Positions 16,981-62,569 of a stretch of DNA of 64,000 nucleotides are shown piece by piece. The stretch comes from Setoptus koraiensis (lineage: Eukaryota; Animalia; Arthropoda), in assembly GCA_048013815.1 (NCBI GenBank), contig CM106585.1, forward strand, positions 1,984,001-2,048,000, given 5' to 3'. Each line of letters begins with the position of its first letter. The stretch's first letter is position 1. The notes beneath the pieces were generated by a model. The model saw only the letters and a program-made list of their open reading frames with translations, did not search any database and was not told the origin of the DNA. Made by a program: the position numbers and the translations under genes.

Positions 16981-18002
16981 TTAGATCGTAGGGAGGTTAC
17001 GATCGTAGATCTTGTTCTCTAAGAAAGGGAAGAATTTGTCTTTCCAGAATGAATCGTCCATCCAGTTATCACTAGATATTATTCTCGTATTCGGCGCAGG
17101 TATCGCTATGCCTAATGATCTGGCGCCACTCGAATAATTCTTCAGGAACTGTTCACACGCTTTGTCATTTTTATCCTTTATGTCGCGATCAGGTCGTTTG
17201 GGATCGTGAGCGCAAAGGGCCAGCATCCATTTTGTAATCGAAACTGGATTGAAGAATTTTACTCCGTCTTTAATATTATAGGCGCCATCAAAAGGTTTGA
17301 TTAATTTGTTGCCCATCAAGCTTGTTGGCTCAAGCTCCCTGCCTTTCACTGGCAATGGCTCAGTACCGATATTAATTCCAAAGGTTTCGTAAATTTTCTT
17401 TCCGCTATTCCTGATATCCGCAGCATTGCGATTTATTTTATCGAAGTGGACATCCGGCTTGGTGGCGGTTTTCCTTATTATTTCAGCGGTCTCCTTAGGA
17501 TCAAACCTTCTCTTGCAATGCTGCTTTTCTATCAACCAGCCCACTTCCATGGGCAAATGGTAGAACTGCTCAGGATTTCCAACTTTAATACAGAATAGTT
17601 TTGGATATTTCACAGTATAGTTATGCACACGTTTGAGATATTCTTCGACCGATGTCTCTCTCACAGCTTTTGTTTCATGGTTAACCTCGTTAAACTTCAA
17701 CTGTTGTGAGTCAATTCTGGCTAATCCAAGTACGCGTACTTTCCTATAGTGTTTAACGCTAGGGTTGGAACCTGGATACGCTTTGTGTCTAACCTCTACT
17801 TGTTTGTGTTTAATGTCAACCTCGAACAGGTCCCATATAGTTTTATCTTTTTGAGCTTCCATAAAGGCAGTTTTGACGTCGACTTGTCCATTTTCTTGCC
17901 GAAACTTTTTCGAAGCCACTCGCTTGCAGAGCAGGTCGACCAGATTGCATTCGTCATAGAACGCGGCGATTGAGTTGGCAACATTCAACAGCATACCAGA
18001 AA

Positions 18003-18076
<74 letters not shown>

Positions 18077-18267
18077 TAATAAATTGGGGGGGGGGGGTGG
18101 GGGGGGGGGGGCGGGGGGGGGGGGGGCGGGGGGGGGGGGGGGGGGGGGGGGGGGGATATTAATAATATATATAATATAAAACATTTTGCCGGGCCTGGCG
18201 ACTCAAATAGAAGCCAGTGTTCAATTTGATCCCATTCCCAAATCTATATCTGTTCTCGGATCCGACA
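16981..18267 (-). CDS. AGO: Divergent Argonaute fragment: L1 (DUF1785), PAZ, L2 and the start of MID; no PIWI domain; 5' end lost in the gap; may be a pseudogene or an assembly fragment
   Basis: ORF 16981-17994: MLLNVANSIAAFY (L1), SVEEYLKRVHNYTVKYPKLFCIKVGNPEQFYHLPMEV (PAZ), KETAEIIRKTATKP and FGINIGTEPLPVKGRELEP (L2). Across the poly-G, 18190-18267 encodes FGNGIKLNTGFYLS, the upstream half of L1. Confidence 0.85.
18006..18155. other. Poly-G tract, probable sequencing or assembly artefact
   Basis: About 140 G broken by a 10-nt AT-rich insert and single bases, next to a scaffold gap; typical of two-colour-chemistry no-signal reads. Confidence 0.75.
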
Positions 18268-18767
18268 NNNNNNNNNNNNNNNNNNNNNNNNNNNNNNNNN
18301 NNNNNNNNNNNNNNNNNNNNNNNNNNNNNNNNNNNNNNNNNNNNNNNNNNNNNNNNNNNNNNNNNNNNNNNNNNNNNNNNNNNNNNNNNNNNNNNNNNNN
18401 NNNNNNNNNNNNNNNNNNNNNNNNNNNNNNNNNNNNNNNNNNNNNNNNNNNNNNNNNNNNNNNNNNNNNNNNNNNNNNNNNNNNNNNNNNNNNNNNNNNN
18501 NNNNNNNNNNNNNNNNNNNNNNNNNNNNNNNNNNNNNNNNNNNNNNNNNNNNNNNNNNNNNNNNNNNNNNNNNNNNNNNNNNNNNNNNNNNNNNNNNNNN
18601 NNNNNNNNNNNNNNNNNNNNNNNNNNNNNNNNNNNNNNNNNNNNNNNNNNNNNNNNNNNNNNNNNNNNNNNNNNNNNNNNNNNNNNNNNNNNNNNNNNNN
18701 NNNNNNNNNNNNNNNNNNNNNNNNNNNNNNNNNNNNNNNNNNNNNNNNNNNNNNNNNNNNNNNNNNN
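18268..18767. other. Assembly gap (500 N)
   Basis: Run of exactly 500 N. Confidence 0.99.
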
Positions 18768-18940
18768 GCAGACATCAATCATCCAATTGAAAAAAAAAAA
18801 AGTTAGTCCAAGTCGAACCATTATCACGCGTCAATTCAATAAGTCATTCGAAGTTAGTTCACTGTAATTTGGTGGCACATTAACTCTTCCAAACATTATC
18901 TACATCACCAGTTGATTGTTTACATACCCACATACATAAA

Positions 18941-19300
18941 GGTTGTAAAGCAAAACCAAAAATGAAGCTCAGTTTATCAGAGATGAGGGAACAACATGAA
19001 TATAAGATGTCCCTAAAGCAACATCATCAATCATCCATCGTAGATTATTTGCATAAACAACTACAACAACGGACAAGCAACAAACAAGATAACGAATGGA
19101 TTGAAAAAGAAAAGAATAATATTAAGTCGTCGTCCAAGTCAGCCAATGGCAAGTTCTCAAAGTTGCATAATGGAAACAGCGGCTCATTAACGCCCCAAAC
19201 AGACAGCGAAAAGAAGCACAATTCTAATAATTGTTTCAGGCGATTAGCCAACACTATCGACTGGCATCAAGTTAATCAATATATGGACTCATTTCCGTAG
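18941..19300 (+). CDS. Unassigned open frame, possibly an exon of a gene cut by the gap
   Basis: About 119 stop-free, non-repetitive codons (GCKAKPKMKLSLSEMREQHEY...RRLANTIDW) after a possible acceptor; no family recognised. Confidence 0.35.
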   Translation, partial: GCKAKPKMKLSLSEMREQHEYKMSLKQHHQSSIVDYLHKQLQQRTSNKQDNEWIEKEKNNIKSSSKSANGKFSKLHNGNSGSLTPQTDSEKKHNSNNCFRRLANTIDWHQVNQYMDSFP

Positions 19301-21511
19301 GGCATTTGTTCGAATCCAATTAACCATCTGCAGAGAAACAATTTATTGAGCAGTATTATTAGTCGTAGTTGGCAGTGATTGGTAATATAGCAATAATAGA
19401 TTAATGCTTAATATTGTTGCTTGATTGGTCTCATTTACCTGATGGATACACACACAAATTGTTTGTTTGTTTGTGTGTATGATTTCTTCTATCCTTATTA
19501 TTGTTACTAACGTCATTAGTATTAAACATAATTAACATAATTATTAATACTAATAGTATTAAGAAATTGTTGTATGTGTGTACCCATTAGAGCCATATTT
19601 TATTTGTCCGTTTAATGGTGGACACAACAGCACAAACATAATTAAGAGTATAATTAAATGTAAAAGCTAGCCGCATCTAACGAGCGAGCTAGTGTCTTCG
19701 TCGCGCTAAAACGCCCATCGATTTCGATATCGGTCATCGTCACAACAAGCGTCTTGGCTAGACAAGACGCATACATTCACAAGTAGAGAGATAAATGTCA
19801 TATCGCTGTCGTGGTCGCTTAAATATTATGATCATATTATTGTACAAATTAATGTGACACTACAGTGACAGCCTACCGCCAGTAACCAATGTAATTTGTC
19901 AATATTATTATTATTATCATTATCATAATCAAGATTACTAATAAATCAGCATACGCACACTCTCATATGGTACACTTATAGTATGACACTTATAGTCATA
20001 TGTGAGTCAATCGGCTAACTATTGCATATATAGTTATTATTATAAATGATTTTATTATTACCAATTAGATGCCAATAACTGTTTTATTAAGTGAGTCAAG
20101 TTAGTAACTTGTTGCAAGCGGTGATAAACTAGCTGTCCATAGAAAAAGTCCGTACGAAACATAACATTTTAGGTAAGTATCAAGAGGACGCATATCAATA
20201 CGTATGGCGTGTATAAATTGTTGTAACTAGGCCACTATTGTAGATGCCGCAACACTGTGAAACACATGATGTGATGCGGCACAAAATGACACGAAATTGT
20301 TGCAAATAGTTTGCTGTGGTCAAGATATTGATACAATGCAACCACAGTGTAGTGTAATAATGACCAGTGATAAGAGACAAGTTGTCGCCAGTTGTCAGAT
20401 TGCCAATTAGCCTAGTTAACAGTACAGCACACAGGTAATGGGTCAGGTGCCGGTGACCTCGATACATGTTGTGTTACTTGCGGCTTGCGTAAATTTTATA
20501 TTTGCAGCCGGTATTGTTGTCTGTTTGGTTGGCTCAAGTCGGTTAGTCCGAACAGCGACACAACAACAACAACGACAACAACAGCAGCAGCACTAGTAGC
20601 AATAACAACAACATCACTACCAATGAGACAAAAGATTTTTCGTCTCTCCACTAGCGTCTTGAGCGAAACTCCATTTGATGTTGTATGGCAACAACATTCG
20701 GTGATGATGAAAAGAAATCTGATTTGTTGTTCACAAGAATAGAACAGCAGTCGTTGTTGCAGTTGTTGCTGTGATAAATAGAATTGGATAGAAAAAAGCT
20801 TTCTTGCCCATTGTTGTCTACGCTTGTGCTAGTCTACTGACCACCAAGTGTCAACTCATTCAATTGTCATCCGATTTAGCAGGCACCGATACAAGTTAGC
20901 GAGTAGCGAGTTTGATTTCCTGCCGGCCGAGTTTCACAGCAAGCAGTACTACGGGCACAAGTGGCAACAAGTGTTGCTTCTTTGCAAGCGTCTTTGCTTT
21001 CTCGACTACTCGCTTCTTTTTGGCTTCTTGTTCGCCTTTGGCCATCACTGTCGGTTATGTAACATTTGTTATGTAACAGCAAGCCAGCAGCAACGGCAGC
21101 ATCGCAGTATCAAATCAACGAGCGGCTATCTATAGACCTTGTTGCCACTATGTATTGTTACAGCTAGCTGTGGATAGAAGATACAAGAGAGCTTCACTTG
21201 AGCACATCACAAGTCCGCATCAGACTTAAAATAATCACAACCAAACAATTATTATTAGTCACTCACAGTGAAACAAACCCAATACTCGTCATATACTCAA
21301 TAATAATCCGATGAGCCAATAATTAATCTTGCTTGGGTTTTTTGAATTCAAATTTTCAACAATTTCAAACAAAACCCGACGACTAGGATCAACGCAGCAA
21401 CTGCTCAGTCAATTTATCACTAATAGCAACACTTGCGACCACAAACAGAGTGAAATCGTAGCCACAGGAGCGTCGTAACAGGAAATAACTGTGTAATAGA
21501 ACATTGTCAAC

Positions 21512-24109
21512 ATGAGGTACTCAAAGCTTCTCTCATGGACACTATTTATGGTTGTATTTATAATTTATTTAACTGCAATTAAATTTGTACGTGGACAACT
21601 GCTACAACCATTGCAATTAGTGGGCCAACCAAATCAAAACATCTTATTTGAGTCCACACTAAAACAACAGCAACAGCAACAACAGCAATCGCAATTAAAG
21701 TTTCAATCGCCGTCACAACAAAATCCCCACAATAGCGTCACCAACAACATTGCTCAACAACTATCCATACAACAGCAGTCACCTTTGCAACAGCAATCAT
21801 CAGCACAGCCACAACCGCAACAATTGCAACGTCCGCAACAAGCTTTCCAAGATCAAGAGCTAATCAACAGTAATAACCATCAGTTATTAGCTAATCAAGC
21901 AAGAGCGCCGGCAACCATAGAATTTACCTATCATAATTATGATGCAATGACAAACTTAATGCACAATATTAGTAAGAATTTTCCCGATATTGTACGTGTC
22001 TACAGTATAGGTCGGTCGGTTCAAGGTGAGTGCAACCCCCCTACGACATACAACGTCTTCATTGAGTGTCTTGGTGTCGTAAATATAGCTGTAGTATGCA
22101 GTTTACGACATTTGATAAAGGGAGCGAGACAGATACAACATTTATGTGTCACATACATTGTGTCTAGCAACTGTCTACGTGATCCCGATAATGAGTCTGA
22201 TAGTTGACCGACCGGCTGACTTTGCAACTTTATTCTTGAACTTGATTGGCTTTTTGTTTACTTTTTGCATTCAACTCTGCCAGTACATTAGTAGTGTCTC
22301 TTATATAATGATTCGAATCTCATAATGAAAGGAGAGAAAAAATTATATAACATACAACATGTTGTGCAATAACAACTTTACACACTTGCATGTACTGATA
22401 GATGGCGGATAGACTGTGTCAGTCAGAGAGAAATGTTGCAATGAAAAGTCGCACAGTAGCTGCTTGCTTACCTTTGAGAAACATGCTCACGTGACTGAAT
22501 ATTTTGAATATAAATATATTCCGACACATTACATAATTGAATTGGGCAAAAATAAATCTGCATACGTGACATTTCTGCAGTGTGCGTTTGGGTCTCACGT
22601 AACACGTTATATCTTGGGTTGCGACTTTCAAAGTTGTCCCACATGGTGGCTGGCTTCGAGCAAGCCTGACAATGATCACATAATACTATCTCTGACAAGG
22701 TTTTTTCTTAATTATTATCTCTGTCTGTTATGCGATGCAGGGCGCCACTTGTGGGTGGCACTGGTCACCAAGGATCCCCAAACCGACGACCAGTTACTCA
22801 AACCAAATGTCAAGTATATCGCCAACATGCACGGGAATGAGGTCGTGGGCAGAGAGCTTTTGCTGCAGCTGCTCGTGTATCTAGTCAATTCGTACCCGTC
22901 TGACCAGTATGTCAAGTATCTCATAGATAATACACGAATACATTTGATGCCGTCCATGAATCCCGATGGCTACGAGATGGTAAGTGTCGCACAGACGAGT
23001 GGTCATCACACATGCGATGACCGATGCGATGACCACACGTCTAAATCATGCTCTTCACTCGTGATTGTCACTAAATAATAATGCTCATAAATAATCTGCA
23101 TCAAAATCCCTGCAACCTCGTCAATAGTCAGTGGAGGGCCAATGCACCAACGGAGAGGGTAGATTCAACACAAACGGCATAGATTTGAATAGAAATTTTC
23201 CCGATTTTTTCGCTCCAAACAATTTCGACAGCTCAAAAGAGCAGCCAGAAACCAAGGCTGTTCGTCTGTGGATCGACAAAATTCCCTTTGTTCTGTCCGC
23301 TAACTTGCACGGTGGGGCCCTGGTGGCATCGTTTCCGTTCGACAATCAAGCTAGCACATGTGAGTACAATTTAATCATTAAATTTTAATGTGACGCAATT
23401 TCACCGTTGCACCAATTGATGCGCGCCTATCACCAATCACCCAATATCCGTTCTAACCGCCCTTATTACCCCCAAATACCATCTACTGTACAAAGTATTT
23501 TCAGTTCTTTCAGCGCGCAGACAAAACTCACAATATTCCGCGACGCCGGACGATGACGTTTTCAAGCATCTGGCTCAAGCCTATTCATTCAATCACAAGA
23601 CCATGCATTTAGGTCAGCCATGTCCCCGAGAAAGACAAAGATTTCTCAATGGAACCACCAACGGAGCACAATGGTATTTACTGGAGGGTGGCATGCAAGA
23701 TTACAACTATTATTGGACCGGTTGTATGGAGGTCACGCTTGAGTTGTCGTGCTGCAAATATCCGCCCAAGAACGAGCTACCTGAGTTTTGGATACAAAAC
23801 AGAAAGGCTCTCATAGCTTATCTGGGAGAGGTGCATCGCGGTGTTCGGGGTCTGTTGCTGAACCCGATGGGAGTTGCGATCACCAATGGCAAATTAAAGA
23901 TCAAGGGAAGAGATTTTAGTTTCCGTGTGAGCCGTCGCGGCGAATTCTGGCGCATTCTCTTGCCAGGTCAATACACATTGCAAGCTACTGCCGATGGTTA
24001 CGAGCCCGCAGAACAAAATTTTGTTGTCAATTCGGGCCAGGTAACTTTTCTGGAGATTCACATGAAACCTGTTGCGTCGAGTGAGCCCGTGAAATATGCA
24101 GACATATAA
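21512..24109 (+). CDS. Secreted M14B (carboxypeptidase M/D/E-like) zinc carboxypeptidase, one catalytic domain plus a transthyretin-like domain; exons 21512-22025, 22741-22979, 23128-23359, about 23505-24109
   Basis: Signal peptide; YHNYDAM...YSIGRSVQG|RHLW; [14 protein letters not shown] (Zn ligands H, E); PSMNPDGYE; DLNRNFPD; SANLHGG (Zn ligand H); GGMQDYNY; [11 protein letters not shown] (catalytic Glu); [12 protein letters not shown]. The GT-AG introns keep the frame. Confidence 0.93.
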
Positions 24110-24559
24110 CAAAAATAAATAGCGATCACATACAGCCAGCATAGCATTTACTCATGGAGTCAACAATAAGATTCATGACTTTCATAATACCACTGAATCG
24201 TGTATCACATTCGTAACATGAGGCCGTCATGTAGTCATAGCAATTGCAACCATTCATTGGGCTATTTACATTCGATGCCACTTGGATGGTCTCAGCGATA
24301 TAATCTGAGCAGATATTGTGGTGTCTTGATTTGATTTAGTTTGCTTTAGTAGTAGTAGTGAAAAACACAATCATGGTGCTGGTAAATATTCGTGCACCAT
24401 GAAGCCTTGTCTGTCGGTTGTCGTAGATGGAGCTTTTCTCGGCCGAGAGAAACCGTTGCGTTGATTTTTGTTTGCTGTACTGTGATCGTTCGGATAGTTG
24501 CAACCGATTCGTTTTATTCAGCGATTGTCAGCTTTTTTTCTACGAAATCACGATAACGT

Positions 24560-25680
24560 TTTGCATCTGATCGATCCTAAGGACAATCTAACACAGCTTC
24601 CACATTCTAACACATGGCTTCGAGTCGCAAACTCACCCTCGTTCATTTCCAATCTTCCATCTTGATTTTGCTGAGACATAGTCGTGTTGTTTGCCTCATA
24701 TTCACCAGGCCAGTTTCAATAGTATAGATCTTTTACGGCTGAGAATAATCTTGTTGCAAGTTGGTTCACTTATGAATTATCTGCACCGTAGGTCGTGCTC
24801 AAGGCTTGGGTTAAAATAGGGAAGACCTCCTAAGCATAGACATACGACAAAAGAAATATTTATCATGTTTTGATAGGTGCGGCCAGTTAGATGGTTTTAC
24901 ATTTTGCGAGCTATGTTTTTCAACAAATGACAACTACTTTTTTATCTGAAGCTGATCACACTTGTTGGGTGATTTATTAACTAATAGTATCAGAGAGTAA
25001 AACAGAGAGTTTAAATACTTTCTCTCTACCAAGAAACTCGAACCCGACCACGAACAAATGTGATAATCGGTGTCGCAATAATTCACTTAACCAAAGTCGT
25101 AAGTCATTTAACTCTTGCGCAACACCACCACATATCCATCGACTACAAACTTGACAAGCGTTCGCAGTAATATGTGGTGGCACGTCAGGGGCGAAAGCGG
25201 GCCTGAGTGCCGAACTGACTTTAGCTTGATATTGTTCTAATATGGAATGACCTGAATATTCTCTTGCTTCTAGATGGGTGAATCTGTCTATAATCGATTG
25301 TAGCATCATCAGACCCTTCAGTCTTAGGTCATCAATAGATGAGGTAACGGCGACAAATGACATTCTTATAGGATCCGACAGATTGTTCACTAAAAAAATA
25401 TATTTTGTATTGGTTGTCGCGTTGATAGACTAGAGATAGAGATTTAGATAGAGAGTGAGTCTGGTAGTGATTCGTATGATCACAAGTACCATCGTTTTCG
25501 CTTGAATATATTTCTATGAGACGTCTCAATACTGACATTGCGTAGATCCTAGTCGTCCATCTGGGCGAACGACCCATCTGTTTCTCATCTGAGGCCTTAA
25601 AAGACTCACCTGGGTCCTCTGCGTTGTATCATCTGTTGCCGATTGTAATTTATTCAAGCAGTCTTGAAGTATCCGCTGTC
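24560..25680 (-). pseudogene. HEATR5: HEATR5 (HEAT repeat-containing protein 5A/B, Laa1-like) internal fragment with a frameshift and stops
   Basis: SPRWTTRIYAMSVLRRLI and LSDPIRMSFVAVTSSIDDLRLKGLMMLQSIIDRF...GHSILEQYQAKVSSALRPAFAPDVPPHITANACQVCSRWICGGVAQELNDLR match the HEATR5 core as remembered. The two blocks are in different frames, shifting near the A7 run at 25392-25398; the downstream sequence has stops. Confidence 0.72.
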
Positions 25681-25818
25681 TTCACCATCTGATACATGTT
25701 CAATCACAGATTGATTGAACATTGTTTCTCAGATATTTAAGGATTTCGATCTACAATTATTATAATTTCTCCCATATCGGAAAACAAATATTATTAATAT
25801 ATATATATCATAAGAACC

Positions 25819-26238
25819 ATGACCCAATGCTCAATTTGTCGAGACGATTTCCCAGACAGTGAGATCAAAAGAACGCCATGCCGACATGAAGCTTATCTTT
25901 TTATTTGCATGGCGGCTGTCTTTAATAATTCAAATTCAGCTATAAAAAAATGTTTCATTTGCCGTCAAGTTCTTACATTATGGGTGGCTAATGGGATGCC
26001 AGATGGAGCAACTTTAGAGCAGCAATCCGAGATTATAACAATAGAAGATTCGGAGACTGAACAGTTTGAGATAGATGTAATCTTGCACCATAGAAGAACC
26101 GGGATCGCAGGTGTAATCTAATTACTAGACAAATGGGCCAATCATCTCGAAGTAGAATGGATAAAAGCGCGTGATTTTCGTCGATTAAGAATAGAGAGAC
26201 CAACCAACCAATTACTTAATTGGTTGGTAGGTAATTAA
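25819..26238 (+). CDS. Small RING-like plus chromodomain-like protein, interrupted by an in-frame TAA at 26119-26121
   Basis: CSIC-x13-CRH-x6-C-x14-CFIC is RING-like with the fifth ligand missing. FEIDVILHHRR-TGIAGVI*LLDKWANHLEVEWIKARDF resembles the chromodomain pattern [FY]EVEKILDHR...YLVKW...TWEP. The frame stays open to TAA at 26236-26238. Confidence 0.55.
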
Positions 26239-27399
26239 CTGATAGTTGAACATTCGTTGGCATTTATGTCAAATTCCAATTTCAACGAAAGTCCTCGTTG
26301 GCCGACTACACAAGTCATAAATTTCTAATCCTTTTTTACCACTTCAGGTAGGTTTCAGTCTCAAAGCGGCTGAAAGAGGGCACCTGAGTAGATGGTGTAT
26401 ACATGTATAAACGATCTACGTTCGTGACCTGTCTATGATCTAATTAGATCGAGAGTAGGTAATCAACTGTAGATAAAAAAGAGGCCATTCAGCGGGCTAA
26501 CAAATTGCAAAAGAGACACTTACTAATAGAACCAAGCAAAACGGTCCAATTCAGATGACACCTCTCAAGGCCCCACTATCATAGAGCCGAATGCTCGAAT
26601 AGCCTAGATGTAATATTATATATTATATAACTATATAGCTTACGAAAATGAACTGCGCTTTGCATTGCTGGATCTTTCTCGTTAGGATGCTCTGCACACT
26701 GGAAAAAAGAAATTCTCGAAAGGGATTTGCATTCGATAGGCGAGCGTTGATAACGATTTCAAAAAGATATACGTCGATAGCTTATTGGTAGGGCCAACAG
26801 AATCGGTGGTAATTCTAACTAGAAATCGGTGAAAATAGTGAGTCATTGGTCATCGATCTCTAAGGATAAAGGTGGTTATTCTCAGTCTGGTCACCTGGGT
26901 AAAAACGATGATTTTTCTGTATCGTTTTTTGATGTCAAGTGATTTCTGGCCGCTAGAGTGCAAGCACCAATGAACTTGTTCAATAAACAGTGCCTGACAG
27001 ACAACAAATAATTAATCCGAGGAGCTTCTTTGAGAGCAATTATATCTTATTTATATCCTGTCCACTCAACTACAACAACAACAACAACTGCAGCCGCAGA
27101 CATAACGCGATGCTTGGGGCTGCTCAGCGATTTGCGACCAGATCTTATTGCGATTTTAGGAATCTATTATCCAAGTGTTGACATCATTTCATCAAATCAC
27201 CGTGAGATCGACATCTCACACATGTAAATCATCAAAAATGGTTGTTTTTCAATTGATCAAAACGGTCGTGCGATTGTTGTGGAGCACTCCACATATGTTA
27301 GTTGTCTGTTACATATGAATCATATGATATGATAAATTCTGGTGGATAAGTGTTTTGCTAATCGCCTACGCTGGTAGTGAATATCCCCTCATTGCAAAG

Positions 27400-28011
27400 T
27401 TAATTAAACTGTGGTGGTGCATCCTCTGCTCTGCTCCAATCGCCCGAATCATAATACCGGCAATCAACAGGTTCCGATTTCCATTGCTCCCAGTAAAATT
27501 TCAGCCGCTGAGCCACCCATTGATCCTTTTTGAAATCTGGCTGAGGGTACCTCCTTTTATAGTACCAGCAAATACTGCCGTATCTTTGACAGTCAAAGCA
27601 ATATGTAGACATGTCCTCCTCTTTTTTACAATTACCTTTATCATCATACAGCCAACACACGTGATAGTAGGATCTTATATCAAAAGGATAACCACATTCT
27701 TTGTTTTTTTTCCATTTTTCAGAATCTAGTTTCATCTTGAGCGCAATTTTTTTATCCTCTAACTGGAATTCACGGTTAGCCCTCTGTTTATACCACCAGC
27801 AAATGCCACTTTGCTCGGGACAGGCATCGCAAAAAACTGAAAAGTCCTGTTCTTTCGAACAAACTTTGTACTCGGAATTCCAATCAACGCACACATGCTG
27901 AATATCGCCCACCTGATAAGCCCTGGTTTTTCCGATTCGTCCACAGGATGTTAGCATGAACAGAGGCGCCAAGAAGATAATTAGGCCACCAATGAGGTTC
28001 GATTTGTTCAT
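27400..28011 (-). CDS. Orphan secreted cysteine-rich protein (203 aa) with two tandem 78-aa repeats of six Cys each
   Basis: Intronless ORF from ATG 28011; hydrophobic leader MNKSNLIGGLIIFLAPLFMLTSC; repeats HVC-x9-C-x9-C-x2-C-x6-CWWYKQR-..-C and HVC-x8-C-x9-C-x2-C-x6-CWYYKRR-..-C. Confidence 0.8.
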   Translation of the reverse strand: MNKSNLIGGLIIFLAPLFMLTSCGRIGKTRAYQVGDIQHVCVDWNSEYKVCSKEQDFSVFCDACPEQSGICWWYKQRANREFQLEDKKIALKMKLDSEKWKKNKECGYPFDIRSYYHVCWLYDDKGNCKKEEDMSTYCFDCQRYGSICWYYKRRYPQPDFKKDQWVAQRLKFYWEQWKSEPVDCRYYDSGDWSRAEDAPPQFN

Positions 28012-30272
28012 CTTGATTTCATGAGGCTGCACACAAACTTGCTATTTAATATTTATCAATAATTCATGATTGATCAAAGTTCAATTGCTGCCGTCGTGCA
28101 CTTAGATCATTCGCAATATCAAATGTCTAGATGAGATTGTACTTTCACTTGATTGATTCACCGAGAATCGCCGTCGACGTTCAAACTACTGACAGCATAC
28201 ATTTGTTCATTTGTGATAGTCACTCACGAATGAATGATCTCACAATTTCAAGAGCAATCTACAACGGTGAGCGATTTTAGATTATCAAGTTTAATTTGAG
28301 TTGAGAGTGCTAACTGGTTGCTGTCAATAGTCTCGACAGCATGAGATTCAATTTACAGTCAGCCAGTCTCTGGGTTGAAAATGATCTGCAAGCCACATGA
28401 AATTTCTACATGAAATGGAGCACACTTTCTATTGGAATTAATTTTAGCAAGACGTCAGATTCAATGTGTGCCTGTTCTGATGATTAAATCATCTTTATCT
28501 CGGGCTGCATATACGGGCAAAGTTTTGTAACTTAGTCATAATAGCATGCGAGATCAGACATTACAAAAGTCCGATAATTCTAGCACACATATGGATTTGT
28601 GGTATTTTACATTTGTATATTGTGGATATTCACAGATATTCCATTGAAGCAGATGCATTGAATAGGCCTAGCAAGCCGACAATAATGTACGAGCAATTAA
28701 GTTATTGGCCGCAGTTGGCTCATTTATAGAATCGCCTAGCGAACCAGTGAGTAGTCTTTTAATAAAAATCAAGCGCTTAATATCTTGTGATAACTTGCTC
28801 GTAAGAGGAGCTATTTTTGGGATTTGTCTGGGTCTCTCAAGTTGAGAGTCTCAAGTGGGGCGCTATCGGTGGCGGGCTCGGTTTGCGAATGGCTCGAAAT
28901 GGCCAGAGGGGCCGATGCACTAACATTTTGAGATGTGGTGCATGCTTGTCATGCTGGCTTGTAACCATGGTGTGACATGTATGGCGGATAGCGTGGCTTG
29001 TCGGCGGACGGGAGAGTTGGGGGCGACTAGTTCAATTTGGCTTGTCATCATAAATTATATCGGACATATTGCCTATGGGTCGAGCATGTCGTTAATAATA
29101 ATATTGGCATCAGCATACGACAACTAATAACTTATCTCCGGCTAACGAAGCTCGCAACATATTGCAAGATGAATATTTGTCAATGTAGACTGGACATATT
29201 GTCAAGAGCAGTTATATTACATTGGCGATTGGCGATTCGCTATTCGCTATTCGCTATTCGCCATTTACGATTCGCCGTTTGCCGTTCGAGAAACACTCAG
29301 TGCTAATCTATTTGGCATTTAACATTATTATGTAACATGACGTATTGAGAGTATTGCAAATGTTGACTAATGATATACACTGTCTGGCCAAATCAATTTT
29401 AACAGTGTGTCCCAATAATAGTTGTGTGCCTTTACTTTTACTTTGCTTAGCGAGCGAAAGAGGCCGCAAAATGCAGACACAGAAGATGATCACTGAGTAA
29501 AACAAAAGACACAACCATTTAAATGGCCAGCTGATATTACACAAATTTAACATGATTGTGAGATGTATTGCAGCATGAGCAAATTGAGGCCCAACTGAGA
29601 AGCAATATAGTTAATGGACAGATAGCGGTGATCAGATGAGAGGCCAGCATGTTTGTTTATGTCAATGCAAATCTTTCTAAGATGACAATTTATTTATTGC
29701 AAGGCACACATACATAAATTTATACCGTGCTATAGTGATGGTATGTAAACAAGTGAGCACAAACATCCGATTGTTGTCTGGTTCACCAAGACAAAACAAT
29801 AAGACAATTTGAGGATAAACATAAACAAGCCGGGGATCACTCGAGCGAGACAGTTTGATTTATTCCTTGTCATACTACCAATAGTGGTATCACCAATAGT
29901 GGCGCTGTCTGGCCAGTTGAGCTTGCCTGTTGTCGGCCCCTGCTACAATAATCACAAATAATCTGACAACTGAACAGTTTAGAATTTTGATTAGCTGTCA
30001 CTGTGCATGTTGATCAAAACCAAATTGCTATGGTCAAAATAAAATGACTGTATTAATCAATGATCTTTATCTCATCGTTCACATTCATTTAGCTGCACAG
30101 ACAAACCAATCGACAAATAAATTATTACGCATCGTTGTGGGCACATCTTTAAATACGACTAATACATTGTTCAGTTCAGTTCTTTGGTAGCATTGATAAG
30201 CTACCAGTTATCTATCAGTTTCTATGTTTTGCTCAAATTCATTCAAATCGAAAGTGTGCTCTATTTCATGCA

Positions 30273-55531: not shown

Positions 55532-58500
55532 ATGAAATTATACGCGCATAACACTGCACAATCACCATATCATTTGGCTGGATGTCTTTCTGTCAATCCG
55601 GGAAATAGTTATAACAATAGTGATCGGCGCCATCGTTCGAAAGGGAAAAAAGGCTCAACGTTTTCTAAAATTGAAGAGGCAACACTACTGATAAAATTGC
55701 TAGGTGCCTTACAACTTTTTTATAATTGTATACGTAATCCAAATCGTGCGAGTGGTCGTCATCATGGTCGCCAATGCTCACTTGCCAACTTGAGCGATAA
55801 ACAAGCTACATCGAATGATAAATTATTCCATATTCATGATAGAGAACACCATAATACCAATCATTACCATAATATTTTGCGACCATGTCCAACACACTCG
55901 ATAGTTCGATTTGGAGATCTAAATTCATGCAAATTGAGCCACCATGATGATCATCGCCACCTATCTAATATTAATGGTTATATTAGAGTTAATCATCTTG
56001 TGAACAACAATAATCCCCATAGTCCTAATGGGATGCTTTCGTCTGAACATATTCCCTCATGTGCGTACCCAGATTTCTACCAAATCCACCTATTGTCGGT
56101 TTGCTGGAGATCTCGTCACGCCAACAGCACAATGGACTGTCGAATAAACCACCGAAAATATAGGACACCGCCATCAGCGCTCAGTGCCATCAACATTTTA
56201 AGGCTAATAATACTTAATATGATGAGCATATATTTTTTGAATTTTATTTTCGGCACTTTGAGCTACACAGCGAACGCAGCCGTTTTTACTTTGATAACCA
56301 GGGATAACCAAAAATTGAATAGTTACTTTAATCATCGCAATCAAATTGTTGATAATCCACAGCTACCAATAAGTGATAATAGTTTCACAAAGCAGGATTC
56401 TGATACAAATGATCATTGGAATAATAATCATCTAAGTAGTGGCACGAGTGATAATATCAATGGCAATCAGATCGCTATAACACCGAAAATGACTTTAATA
56501 CGTGTACCCGCTGATTCAAGTGCTATTCTCAAATGTTTGATATCATCAAGATCGCGCTTCGAATCTAAGCTCAATATACAGTGGTCAAGGTATCTATATC
56601 ATGAAGATATTACGGAACAGATATCACCTCAGCTTACTTCTGCCAGCAACAATATCATCCAACATAATCTCAATCTTCAAAAAAAATCATTGGTCCTCAG
56701 CGATAATCTCACTACTGTTGATCTTGAGCATCCCGATAGAACCGAGAAGACAGTCAAAACAACAGATCCTACAATTGAAACTCGATTTCGACAAGAAATC
56801 AAAGAAATCTCGGATATCTTAATAGAGTCCTCTCTAGCGATCACACCGGTTACAACGCGCGATAACGCCAGCTATTTCTGCATAGCCAGTGACAACCTAT
56901 ATATTAATGAAGCCAAAATTGATTTATTAGTTTTATCTCTTCCTATTGTGAGTATTCCTTTTTTATAAATTCTTATAAATATACAGTTCATTCTTGAATA
57001 TCGTGCCAAGCTACCCACGATGCTTGCATGATAAGTAGATCTATATCCAGCATTTATAAGTTGGGAATATCGGTTATGGCTCACTTATTCAATGAATACG
57101 GACATTCAATAACACGGATATCTTGCTCATGATACTAAAATGTTTTCCGATATGATATTCTTCTAGGTTCGTATGGATAGGATTGTTCCAGCAAAAAATC
57201 CTAGGTCTGCGCTTATTTTCTGGACAATCTTATCTGATGGAAATGCCCCCTTGAGAAAAACTATTCTAATGATCAAGAATGATAGTCTTGCAACTGATAC
57301 TAAATCAGTCAGTCCAACGCTACCATCGCTCAGTCACTTAAGCAGCAACACCAGTGGAGGTTCTCTATCTTCACTTGTGACTGATGGAGATTTGAATCAG
57401 TGGCATAAGATTGAAGTTGGTAGCAAAGATTTCATACGGAACTTTGATACTGAAAGTGATAGATACAACACTGGAAATGACGAAAATGATAACTATATTG
57501 TATCTGTGGATCACGGACCAAATCAAGATTTACGGAAAGATAGAGCCCAAGGAATATCGAAAACTAGGGTTCAACATAGATCGTATAACTTGACTTTCCT
57601 ACTGCCAGGTGTAACGTACACCATCAGATTGGCAGTAATAAATGATGTTGGTCAGTCGAATTGGTCGCAGATCACTACTACCATGCCCAGCGACGTTCCA
57701 GAGCAGATAGCGGAAATGTTTCTTATTGCCAGGACTAATGAATCGCTAGCTATTGGTTGGCGAAGGCCATCTCACGATAATGGCGCCAAAATTAACCGTT
57801 ATGAGATGCAATTGTTCGATCTGAACAGGACTGTCACGATTGACGCGGCTACGAATACTTCCGTGATGTCAGCAAAAACAAACTATATGTACTTTTTTGT
57901 TAATTTAAATGCTGGAACAGACTATCATTTTCACGTTCGTGCTTGCTCTCGAATAGGTTGTGGAGTTTACTCAAATCCAAAGCTCTTGGCTAGCACTATT
58001 GATGGTGAAGCAGACGAACCTTCACTCGTTGAGGTATCATGCAATGATCAAAATAGTCAGATATCAATTACTTGGAAACCACCATCAGTCACACGAGGTC
58101 TAATAGTCAACTATAATATCACAATAGATGCGTACGCTCGTTATCGCAACCAAACTAATCAATGGACCATAGATCAATGGAAAGTTTCTTTTGAGACTAA
58201 AGATAATCACACAAATAGATTTGAGGCATCAATTTTATTACCGAATACAAATTATTCTGTGAGAATTTGTGCCATAAATAGGGTAGGAATATGTGGAAAA
58301 TTGAGCCATTTATCCGCAAATACTCAATGCTCGACGAGTTCTACTGTGCCTACATCAATACCAGATGGTATACAATTGACCCGTTATAACAAAAGGGATA
58401 CGAGTGATAAACAAATGGGTAACCCTTCTATGATTAGGAACGATGTGACATTGAAAAACAATGAACAACAGAATGGTCAGTTAGTTTCCCCTGATCAACT

Positions 58501-61500
58501 CATGGTTTTAAAGTTTCCGCAAGTAAATCAGAGGAACGGTCAGGTCAATTGTGTACAAGTAGTGTTGATCAAGTTACCTACCGACTTCAATATTGAACGT
58601 CCTTTAGAAACCTATCTGCCACAAACTCCAGCCGATGTTGGTCTAACTCATTATAACATCTCGAATACAATAGAACGCTTCGATGGTGTAACTAGCGACC
58701 ATTCAAAAGAGTTATCAAACGAAACTACATCACACAAAAACTTGGAGAAAACGTCCTTTCACGCATACATAGCCGAAGAGTTGGATTTGGATAACCTTTC
58801 CACCAAAGCAAATTTCAGCTCTATTGTTCTAGGGGATGAAGTTTTCTCCACTTGTAAGATTAGTTCTACGGATAGTTATATCGCCACAAATCAAACTGTC
58901 AAATATCAAGAATCATCTTCTGATAATACGGGCTCCAACAATTTGACAACCTCTCGCTCAGTTTTTGATGGCAAGCTGCAGCCCAATACTTTCTATACTG
59001 GTTTTCTAAAATTGCTAGTGAAGACTAATAACGAGTTCAGCAGATTAGGGCATGATAGTAGTCAGCAAGACAATGGCAAGATTTTAGTGAAATATAGCGA
59101 TTATTTTGATCCTATCAAAACAGGATTTGATACAGATATTTTCAATTCTGGCGATCCTTCAAATAGTGATGCTCAAAGTCAATGGGCGAATATAACACTC
59201 TCATCCCGATATAGATCGTTGATAAATTCGATGACTGATTCGATAAACCTAGACAACTTGAGTGAATGGATTCTGAAATCAAATCCTGTAGTAGTAGCGT
59301 TTTGGGTAGCCCTTGTGTTCGCATCTTTAACACTTCTGCTGTTTCTAGTTATAATAATGATCGGAAAGGTGCCGAAGAATGTAGGTGAACGTAAAATAAC
59401 GAAACAGTCCAAAGAAAAGGACAAAGAATCTGCAAACATGTACCACCTAGAGCAACAAGATGTACAATTTATTAACAATGGATACCCCAACAACATTCTT
59501 GTTAGGAATTGGGAAGAAAACAATCAAAATAACACCTTGAAAGGTGCACTGAACACTGATCCGAATTCGATGCTAATGAGAATTCCCAATCATCATGATG
59601 CATCACCTCTGCCTGACCATATTAAACCTACTGTAGGTCATGAATTGGATAGTCGTCAATACTTATTGTCAGGATCAAAAACATTAGCTATAAGGCGGTG
59701 TAGTAATAAATGTGCTAATGGTAATGATGCCAAAATACAATCGTCACATGATGATGGTGCATTAACATTGAATCACAACAATTCCATCATGTCTTTGTCG
59801 AAGAAATTCAACAGATCTATACCATTGAAAAGCTTTTGCGCTGTTTACGAATGCAGATTGCGCAACGGATGGTTGAAACAAGAATTTGAACAATTGCCCA
59901 AGCCAACTATCGCCACCTCACTTACTAAAGCATTCTATAATAATGTTCCACAAGGTAGTGTATCGGGTATGAACGGAATGCATATAGCACACCATGTCAC
60001 AGTTCAAAACAATGATATAACTAGCCATTGTCTTCAACATACAAATAAGAATTCCACTGGCAGTAAAATAAGTAACGGTGTAATTGCTGTCAATGGATTA
60101 GATTCTTCAATGGTAATTACCTCAGATATCAATGATAATACAAGTTCAACAGCCACCAATAACGCCGAGATGATAACCACAGCAGTACTAGAATCGGCGC
60201 CAGTTGAATCTACTCATAATCATTCGGTCGGTGGTAGTAAGAGACGTGGGAAGCAGACGTCCATTGTGTTGAATCCATATCTTATTGTTTCTACAAGTGA
60301 ACCGCTAGAGTGTAACGGGGGTCAACCATTATCAGTAGTAGTATGCGGCGAAGAAGCCATTGATGCCAATCTTGTAATGGGTTACAATGCTCCATATAAC
60401 ACAAGCACTACAAATGGTGCTGTGATGGGTAGCGATTTTGTACGACAACAAGCCAGTCTAGATAGGAAAGCATACATTTGCTCAAAATCGCCTTCAGATG
60501 CAGACTCTGTCTGGGATTTCTGGCGCATGATTTATGAATACAATGTCCCAATAATCGTCATGCTGACACCTATTGAGGTTAACGGTAAATTTAAATGTGC
60601 TCAATACTGGCCCACATGTGATAATGAAGAAACGACAATATTATCACCACGTACTCAAATGGCTCAAAAATCTAAGATGCCATTAGCAAAATTTAAGATC
60701 CGACAGGAGACACTTAGCGTGCTCCAAGATTATACTGTACGTCGATTGAGCCTTGTAATTATGCCAACAAGACCAGATAAAGACGATGAATCTGAGTCAA
60801 GTAAAATGTTTGACTTACATCCCGAAATAGAAGACATCATTGTTGTGAAACGCGACATAATACATTTCCAATGTCATAATTGGAAGAGTTTTTATGTATA
60901 TTCCCGCTCCCTCCGCTTAATTAAGTTTACGGAGCATGTTGATGATCAGTATTCGCAGGCAATTCAACAGAATTCACTTAGCGGGCCCATATTGGTCCAT
61001 TGTGGCAGTGGTTCAGGCCGTAGTGGGGTTTTTGTTTCCGTTGATCTCATACTGACTCATATGACTAGTTCAGTGCTACAACAAACCAGCATAACAACAG
61101 CAAAAGAAGAAGAAGAAGATCACGAGCTGATAAAACCTGCCGATGAAACTCTAGAAGATCGAAAACTGTTAGAACGGAAGCGCCTGTTCAATATTAATAT
61201 ATTCGATTTATTGTCAATCTTGCGTTTCCAAAGGACATTCATCGTGCGATCGTATAAGCAGTACAGGATGATATACCACACTATCGCTGAATATTATCTA
61301 TTTGGTGACACAGAGTTCCACACGTCTGAACTAGATAAAATCTTCAACCACTACAAAAATCTCCAATCAATACCAAATGGCATTGAGAATGAATTCTTGA
61401 AATTGGATCAACTGACCAAACTGGAAACCAAAAGCACATATGTATCATCACTCAAATACAACCTAAATCGTAATCGCTATGTTTCTATAGTACCATACGA

Positions 61501-62569
61501 TGAAAATAGGGTCATACTGCCAATCATACCAGAAAGCTCGCCAATAAGAGATCAAACTTCCTATATAAATGCCTCGTATATACAGAATCCAAACGATAAG
61601 ATATCATTCATCATAGCGCAAAATCCTTTGGAAAATACTATTGGAGATTTTTGGAAAATGCTATACTTTCAAGCAGTAAACAAAGTTTTGATGATATCGA
61701 GCTCACCCAATAACTCATGTCCTCAATATTGGCCTGACGAAGACGGATTCAATTGTGACTACCTGAGCATACGAATGATCTCTGAGACTATTCAGCCAAT
61801 GTTCATCGAACGTACCTTTGATATACTCAATCTCAAGCCCCAGCTTGTTGCCGGTCCATGTGAGATAGATTATGAATTTCAGAGCCATGATACTAGTGAT
61901 ATTCAATTGAGAACTAGACGCCACAAAGTTGTCGTATATCAGTACTTGGATTGGCCTGTTACTGAGTCGAAGCCAATAACGATGTATTCATTGATTGAAC
62001 TCATAACAAGATCTTCACTCTTGGATGACCCTACCAATTGCTTCAATCCTTCTAGTGACTTAGATAACTTCATACCACCTGCACCTGTAGTAGTTCATTG
62101 CGATAAAGTAAGTACATTTTGTCCACTATACCTACTAACTAAAATTTTCTGAAAATTGTTTGCTCCGGTTAGTCTAGCAGTGTTATTAATATCCACTCTT
62201 TTTAATATATTTCTGCTACAAAATCCTTATTTACAGGGTAACCGATCAAGCGTCGTAGTTGTGCTCACATTCTTGATGCGTCAGATTATACGGGAGCAGC
62301 GCGTCGATCTAGTACAGACTTGTCGGCTAGTCAGATCTCAGAGAATGGGATTGATCAATGCACCATCTCAATACGACTTGATATATAGGTGCTTGTTAGA
62401 GTATGTAAATCAACAAGGAAGTATTAGTATACAGCCAATTGATGAATATCAATTGGAAAACGCCAACGGCCAGCAACAAGCAGAGTCCGAATCACAGTAT
62501 CAGACGCAAATACTAGCCAACGGGTCTTGTTCACATGTTACTTCTATGTTACCGATTGTTATGGCCTGA
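55532..62569 (+). CDS. Ptp69D: Ptp69D-like receptor tyrosine phosphatase: Ig domain, three FN3 repeats, membrane-proximal region, TM helix, tandem PTP domains; exons 55532 (or 56219)-56947, 57167-62107, 62237-62569
   Basis: Signal-like segment MMSIYFLNFIFGTLSYTANA at 56219; Ig motifs LKC...W and DNASYFC; FN3 motifs LLPGVTYTIRLAVINDVG, LNAGTDYHFHVRACSRIGCG and LLPNTNYSVRICAINRVG; TM near 59285-59365; D1 VHCGSGSGRSG; D2 NRNRYVSIVPYDENRV and YINASYI; phase-0 GT-AG introns. Confidence 0.88.

Follow-up and report, generated by a model that had tools for sequence, protein, structure and literature searches.

A putative secreted protein built of two six-cysteine modules encoded in the genome of Setoptus koraiensis

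A 203-codon ORF on the minus strand of contig CM106585.1 of Setoptus koraiensis (positions 27400-28011 of the window, by which we mean the whole analyzed stretch of 64,000 nt) raises the question of whether it is a genuine gene of the animal and, if so, what kind of protein it specifies. The first-pass annotation, made from the letters of the DNA, had described an intact, intronless ORF with a leader ending in L-T-S-C and two six-Cys repeats, and every element of that description turned out to be right. On balance, and with some reserve, we favor the reading that this is a genuine, expressed, single-copy and lineage-restricted animal gene for a secreted protein, whose two modules would enable it to bind its ligand bivalently.

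The ORF is uninterrupted between the ATG at 28011 and the TAA at 27400-27402, and exhibits the following layout:

27400..28011, minus strand: coding sequence, 203 codons plus TAA, intronless (ORF read, a contig of sequencing run X7 collinear with the genome and without a joint, and in-frame codon score).
27943..28011, minus strand: signal peptide, residues 1-23, with the n-region MNKSN, a 15-residue hydrophobic core and T-S-C, which gives the lipobox-like L-T-S-C (hydropathy and pattern match; putative end at the Cys).
27688..27924, minus strand: repeat 1, residues 30-108, with Cys 41, 51, 61, 64, 71 and 106 and the core ICWWYKQR (Cys positions and repeat alignment).
27454..27690, minus strand: repeat 2, residues 108-186, with Cys 119, 128, 138, 141, 148 and 184 and the core ICWYYKRR (Cys positions and repeat alignment).
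27403..27453, minus strand: residues 187-203, a short acidic tail at the C-terminus (residues 185-203 have a computed pI of 4.2).

Of the 6129 stop-to-stop frames in the window, only 16 have 200 codons or more, and since this long ORF carries a conserved internal duplication, a chance origin is ruled out. Its base composition (GC 0.42, GC3 0.45) is like that of the neighboring animal genes. With a codon model trained on the genes of the window, the ORF obtained a log-odds score of 0.116 bits per codon in its own frame, which falls inside the range of the training genes (0.059-0.195) and about 1.5 SD above the non-coding ORFs (0.017 +/- 0.065), with the other five frames scoring from -0.10 to -0.37.

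Thirteen Cys residues are present in the protein, the one at position 23 in the leader and six in each repeat, with the spacing C-x9/8-C-x9-C-x2-C-x6-C-x34/35-C in both repeats, exactly as it had been read initially. The MAFFT alignment of residues 30-108 with residues 108-186 extends over ~79 columns with 31% identity and one single-residue gap per repeat, and the invariant columns include HVC, the six Cys, I-C-W, Y-K, R and W-K. The local self-alignment score is 119, compared to 31.7 +/- 6.2 (maximum 71) in 500 shuffles, which corroborates the earlier proposal of an old internal duplication of an unrecognized six-Cys module. The retention of all six Cys in both repeats at only 31% identity implies, as judged from the comparison of the repeats, that the module would have been under purifying selection after its duplication. 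Aromatic residues account for 18% of the mature part (pI ~8) and for 25% of repeat 2. Each module appears to be composed of an N-terminal half that is dense in Cys, with five of them within 31 residues, followed by a segment of 34-35 residues with amphipathic periodicity and by the sixth Cys. AlphaFold2 models of the full protein built from the single sequence (pLDDT 39) and of repeat 2 built with the two-repeat alignment (pLDDT 48) are both of such low confidence as to be unusable, and the segment between the fifth and the sixth Cys is helical in one of them and a strand in the other.

The N-terminus contains the sole hydrophobic window of the protein (residues 6-20, mean Kyte-Doolittle value 2.63; all others do not exceed 0.23), and the remainder is strongly hydrophilic (GRAVY -1.11). 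By hydropathy, the protein has an N-terminal signal peptide and no further membrane segment, which corresponds to the classical picture of a eukaryotic secretory protein. Residues 1-23 also match the lipobox expression [LVI][ASTVI][GAS]C (of the PROSITE PS51257 type), with a basic K3 and the Cys at position 23, so the earlier statement that the leader end fits the lipobox consensus is borne out as a pattern. Animals are not known to possess the Lgt/Lsp lipoprotein pathway, and therefore the resemblance is most simply explained as a coincidence, arising from a leader that happens to have small residues before a Cys. Cleavage after either C23 or G24 would have small residues at -3 and -1, as the rule for these positions demands; a cut there would leave exactly 12 Cys residues, enough for three disulfides per module.

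Database searches failed to place the protein in any family. The only Pfam match at E <= 10 was TMEM95, with an insignificant E-value of 4.1, and none of the profiles of Kazal, Kunitz, EGF, knottin, saposin, granulin, TIL and WAP domains matched at this threshold, nor did CBM14/peritrophin-A (PF01607). No match was obtained in NCBIfam or by exact-sequence look-up, neither the full protein nor the two-repeat profile retrieved anything from 5.8 billion word-indexed clusters, and a pattern-plus-tblastn search revealed no credible relative among the genomes of 185,579 species of bacteria and archaea, in the IMG/VR viral contigs or in the JGI metagenomes. The ESM Atlas reported no named cluster and only unnamed bacterial ones, with sub-threshold scores of 0.76-0.80 that shuffled sequences attain a third of the time, and a search of the published literature on the core motif found no paper.

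HMMER, run exhaustively over 1.84 billion representative proteins, gave one match (P0001, E-value 2.3e-4), an 874-aa bacterial lipoprotein composed of five near-identical ~160-aa repeats. We rejected it as a relative: the 60 aligned residues keep 1 of the 6 Cys, and the score against a single repeat is 15.1 bits (E-value 1400 at library scale), i.e. the apparent significance comes from summing repeats that are not independent.

Altogether, the orphan status that the first-pass annotation had assigned to the protein withstood the Pfam, NCBIfam, PDB, word, HMMER, genome and metagenome searches, none of which yielded a family match. The word "orphan" is to be understood here as having no relative outside an unsampled lineage, and not necessarily as species-specific, for the query itself was not recovered from the libraries, in which eriophyoid proteomes are probably scarce or absent. 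A search for paralogs in the animal's own genome (48.76 Mb in two contigs), which had been suggested along with the initial description, found the gene itself as the sole protein match at E <= 10 and indicates a single-copy gene. The degenerate DNA pattern C-x6-CW[WY]YK occurs across the genome as often as its reversed control, and two additional exact matches to it were rejected as paralogs, their frames being full of stops.

Eriophyoid mites are among the smallest of animals, and they manipulate their host plants or induce galls on them. The genome of Setoptus koraiensis, from Korean pine, has been described as 47 Mb anchored to two chromosomes (PMC11920263). The tiny, intron-poor, two-chromosome genome analyzed here probably fits such an eriophyoid plant mite. 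The genes in the neighborhood of the ORF are those of an animal, and comprise a receptor tyrosine phosphatase, an Argonaute PAZ/Mid piece, an MFS transporter, a HEATR5 fragment, a RING finger ORF and the exons of an M14 carboxypeptidase with a CarboxypepD_reg domain (carboxypeptidase D-like). The phosphatase (57173-62152, plus strand) is a 1659-aa receptor-type protein with FN3 repeats and two phosphatase domains encoded in a single uninterrupted ORF, which illustrates the extreme intron poverty of this genome.

The 1.8-kb stretch around the gene is represented by 96-100% of its sampled words in six DNA-like runs from three studies. A 3414-nt contig (25848-29261) of the independent DNA run X5, which carries the label of organism B and belongs to a separate study, covers the gene together with both flanks; its depth is 112, compared to 130 for the contig over the neighboring carboxypeptidase exon. 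The initial description had named a contaminant segment mis-joined into the scaffold as something to be looked for; the spanning contig with its similar depth over gene and flank, the GC content and the codon use exhibit no signs of contamination or mis-joining, and indicate that the gene is integrated. The 203 codons are intact under three species labels and in no fewer than four studies, and the X5 contig contains a single difference:

27497..27497, minus strand: A>T on the plus strand, changing TTT to TAT, i.e. F172Y (X5 contig 25848-29261).

This is one non-synonymous polymorphism, which has no statistical power regarding selection. Run X5 also contains a 151-nt contig (27860-28010) of low depth (2.4) with 7 differences (~95% identity). 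It lies over the 5' portion of the coding sequence, the A of the start codon being the first base that it leaves out, and may represent a diverged allele or an orthologous gene of a related mite that was sampled as well.

Several further features of the window were observed. An isolated 137-aa ORF (24977-25577, minus strand) matches the HEAT region of Laa1/Sip1/HEATR5 (PF20210, E-value 1.8e-34), with no further large minus-strand ORF nearby toward a full-length HEATR5 (~2000 aa) and with zero coverage in run X7. The ORF represents a fragment, a pseudogene, or else part of a heavily split gene. It is followed by a 100-aa ORF with a RING finger (25819-26121, plus strand; PF13639, E-value 2.2e-6). 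The region 25088-26240 is structurally polymorphic in X5, where 1151 bases are replaced by 15 others in one contig, 14 nt are inserted behind 25669, and SNPs cluster at 25525-25575; the rest of the 5.9 kb compared (23500-29400) is almost invariant in the same run. Farther away, at 18000-20000, the GC content falls to 0.30 and ORFs of 185-222 aa overlap on both strands (18159-18867), a pattern suggestive of low-complexity or repetitive sequence immediately downstream of the minus-strand Argonaute-like ORF.

The indication of expression comes from run X7 (of unknown kind, organism C), which contains a 1084-nt contig (27018-28101) over the gene with a depth of 18.5 and zero differences. The depth is zero on both flanks of this contig; the other coverage over the gene is a short match to a microsatellite (27066-27098), and elsewhere the sole covered piece is a part of the carboxypeptidase exon, with a depth of 7. 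The contig encompasses the 203-aa ORF as its single long ORF, with 90 nt upstream and 382 nt downstream:

28012..28101, minus strand: putative 5' UTR of 90 nt that includes two very short upstream ORFs and has an A at position -3 (upper end of the X7 contig, which is not equivalent to a proven transcription start).
27018..27399, minus strand: putative 3' UTR, 382 nt (X7 contig and sequence).
27066-27098, minus strand: (GTT)n/(CAA)n microsatellite in the putative 3' UTR.
27050-27055, minus strand: TATAAA in the putative 3' UTR, ~30 nt before the contig end.

The two tiny upstream ORFs comprise 3 and 4 codons, and the TGA of the second overlaps the main ATG. Since a DNA run of depth 18 would be expected to cover the flanks, the X7 contig can be read as an mRNA, and its collinearity with the genome indicates that the transcript is unspliced. 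An unspliced mRNA is therefore strongly suggested by the shape of the coverage, the contigs themselves showing neither strand nor true ends. Four runs of the same study contain 25-63% of a 1801-nt query, and the contig accounts for 0.60 of it (1084/1801). In the RNA runs X11 and X14 there are 0 reads on 23500-29400, known exons included, i.e. this organism is absent from both. Many large poly-A RNA runs among X7-X24 share the species label of X7, organism C. This label probably denotes the host plant, and the study to which X7 belongs (P5) probably sampled infested tissue with mites carried along. That the ORF is a part of the animal genome and is transcribed is thus supported on the first count by the X5 contig and probable on the second from the X7 contig.

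What could such a protein do? With an ordinary eukaryotic signal peptide it would enter the ER, where the leader would probably be removed at or just after Cys23/Gly24. The secreted product would be a very hydrophilic, aromatic-rich protein of ~22 kDa with two homologous ~78-aa modules, each probably stabilized by three disulfides, whose pairing and fold we infer. In the predicted layout of a module an amphipathic segment of ~25 residues would be followed by the last Cys, which would staple the end of the module back. No catalytic signature was identified in the protein, and because the two disulfide-stabilized modules share an aromatic/basic patch, we propose bivalent extracellular binding. 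The most likely action would be the binding of an extracellular ligand by both modules via the conserved aromatic/basic face ICW[WY]YK[QR]R, and the ligand could be a glycan, a polyanionic polymer, or a protein of the host or of a microbe, as suggested by the composition and the conserved residues. The same principle of two homologous disulfide-stabilized modules and bivalent binding is known from the double-knot spider toxin DkTx, the tick carboxypeptidase inhibitor and double-headed Kazal inhibitors, with which our protein nevertheless shows no kinship in sequence or Cys framework, its modules being about twice as long.

A more specific version of this role would make the protein a salivary effector or toxin, produced in the salivary gland and injected into plant cells, where it would suppress the defense or reprogram the tissue. 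The protein is secreted, as judged from its leader, Cys-rich and lineage-specific, and it is apparently well expressed, with the X7 contig having 2.6 times the depth of the neighboring gene. The RNA runs X11 and X14, which have the label of X7, contain no reads of this animal, which fits samples of a host plant that carry mites. In addition, the effectors of eriophyoids, of which none is known at the molecular level, are expected to be species-specific, and the predicted secretome of Aculops lycopersici can serve as an example for comparison (PMC7738191). The candidate effectors of plant-feeding mites among Cys-rich secreted proteins share with our protein the signal peptide, the small size, the many Cys residues, the narrow lineage and the lack of an enzymatic signature. 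However, this is a single gene with two internally duplicated 78-aa modules and not a member of an expanded or tandem family, and the above description would suit every secreted orphan equally well, so that we regard an effector or toxin as a possible but rather unlikely reading.

Alternatively, the protein could act on the animal itself, as an extracellular component of the cuticle, eggshell, spermatophore or gut lining, or as an immune lectin, binding the animal's own chitin or matrix, or microbes. Tandem aromatic-rich six-Cys modules are a typical arthropod build for binders of chitin and matrix. The Peritrophin-A/CBM14 modules of arthropods are likewise secreted, aromatic-rich, of ~65-80 aa with six Cys and often in tandem, and the single copy of the gene and its near invariance between samples would also agree with a structural role. 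Yet neither CBM14 nor any other known chitin-binding family matched the protein, and the spacing x9-x9-x2-x6-x34 differs from that of the CBM14 framework; we consider a structural or self-directed function unlikely.

It is highly improbable that the ORF is non-functional, i.e. decaying or never functional, in a region of gene fragments. The neighborhood at 24.9-26.3 kb does contain the isolated HEATR5 fragment and the RING ORF, the recognition value of the protein in the protein atlas is low (1613), and the codon score exceeds that of non-coding ORFs by just the ~1.5 SD given above. On the other hand, the reading frame is preserved in all the species labels and studies mentioned, the Cys framework has been kept across an old duplication, and the transcript-like contig brackets the ORF exactly.

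The first-pass annotation had also considered a horizontally acquired lipoprotein-like gene, i.e. a bacterial lipoprotein gene that would have been domesticated by the animal. With bacterial lipoproteins the ORF has in common the N-terminal basic residue (K3), the hydrophobic core and L-T-S-C, and it is intronless; moreover, the nearest language-model neighbors are the unnamed bacterial clusters, albeit at a level common among shuffles. In contrast to bacterial lipoproteins, the gene is found in a eukaryotic genomic and transcript context, and no bacterial relative is present among the 1.84 billion representatives, the genomes of the 185,579 species or the metagenomes, the one HMMER match being the repeat-summing artifact described above. 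GC and codon use are host-like, the minus strand has no sigma-70-like site upstream of the ORF and no AGGAGG-like ribosome-binding site visible ahead of the ATG, while the transcript-like contig has eukaryote-style UTRs. The absence of introns is uninformative in an intron-poor genome, where the phosphatase ORF is likewise uninterrupted. The proposal is weakly refuted by the missing bacterial relatives, the host-like composition, the lack of a bacterial promoter and the type of the UTRs, and we find such an origin very improbable indeed.

A tandem-duplicated, degenerate arachnid CS-alpha/beta (scorpion-toxin/defensin-like) domain is hardly credible: mites and scorpions are both arachnids, and the best PDB sequence match was the scorpion toxin BmKa2 (E-value 0.048; four Cys and the stretch 'YG..CW.YK' aligned to repeat 2 within a local similarity of 47 residues to the long-chain sodium-channel toxins, PDB 2kbh, which is insignificant), but we rejected this match, as the two-repeat profile weakens it to an E-value of 0.15, a chance level behind T-cell-receptor V-alpha chains (E-value 0.034), the defining CxxxC...CxC pairs are missing from both repeats, neither of which has a CxxxC or a CxC, the module is longer, with its 34-35-residue segment between the fifth and the sixth Cys, and neither Pfam, beyond the insignificant TMEM95, nor the 1.84 billion proteins contain such a relative.

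Returning to the reading that we favor, a single-copy gene for a secreted, bivalently binding two-module protein, the kind of gene it would represent is a familiar one, as arthropod genomes commonly encode secreted Cys-rich orphans, and the protein is an ordinary candidate more than a surprise. It is the module that is new to every library searched. As a secreted, disulfide-stabilized and apparently well-expressed protein with an unrecognized duplicated module, it is a concrete candidate all the same, and if its fold is new, it would add an extra domain family. At the far end of what we would speculate, and with a decidedly low expectation of being right, the protein could be the first representative of a novel disulfide-rich fold, delivered in eriophyoid saliva to bind a component of the plant cell wall or of plant defense bivalently; if this were true, it would be among the first molecularly defined effectors of the eriophyoid superfamily.
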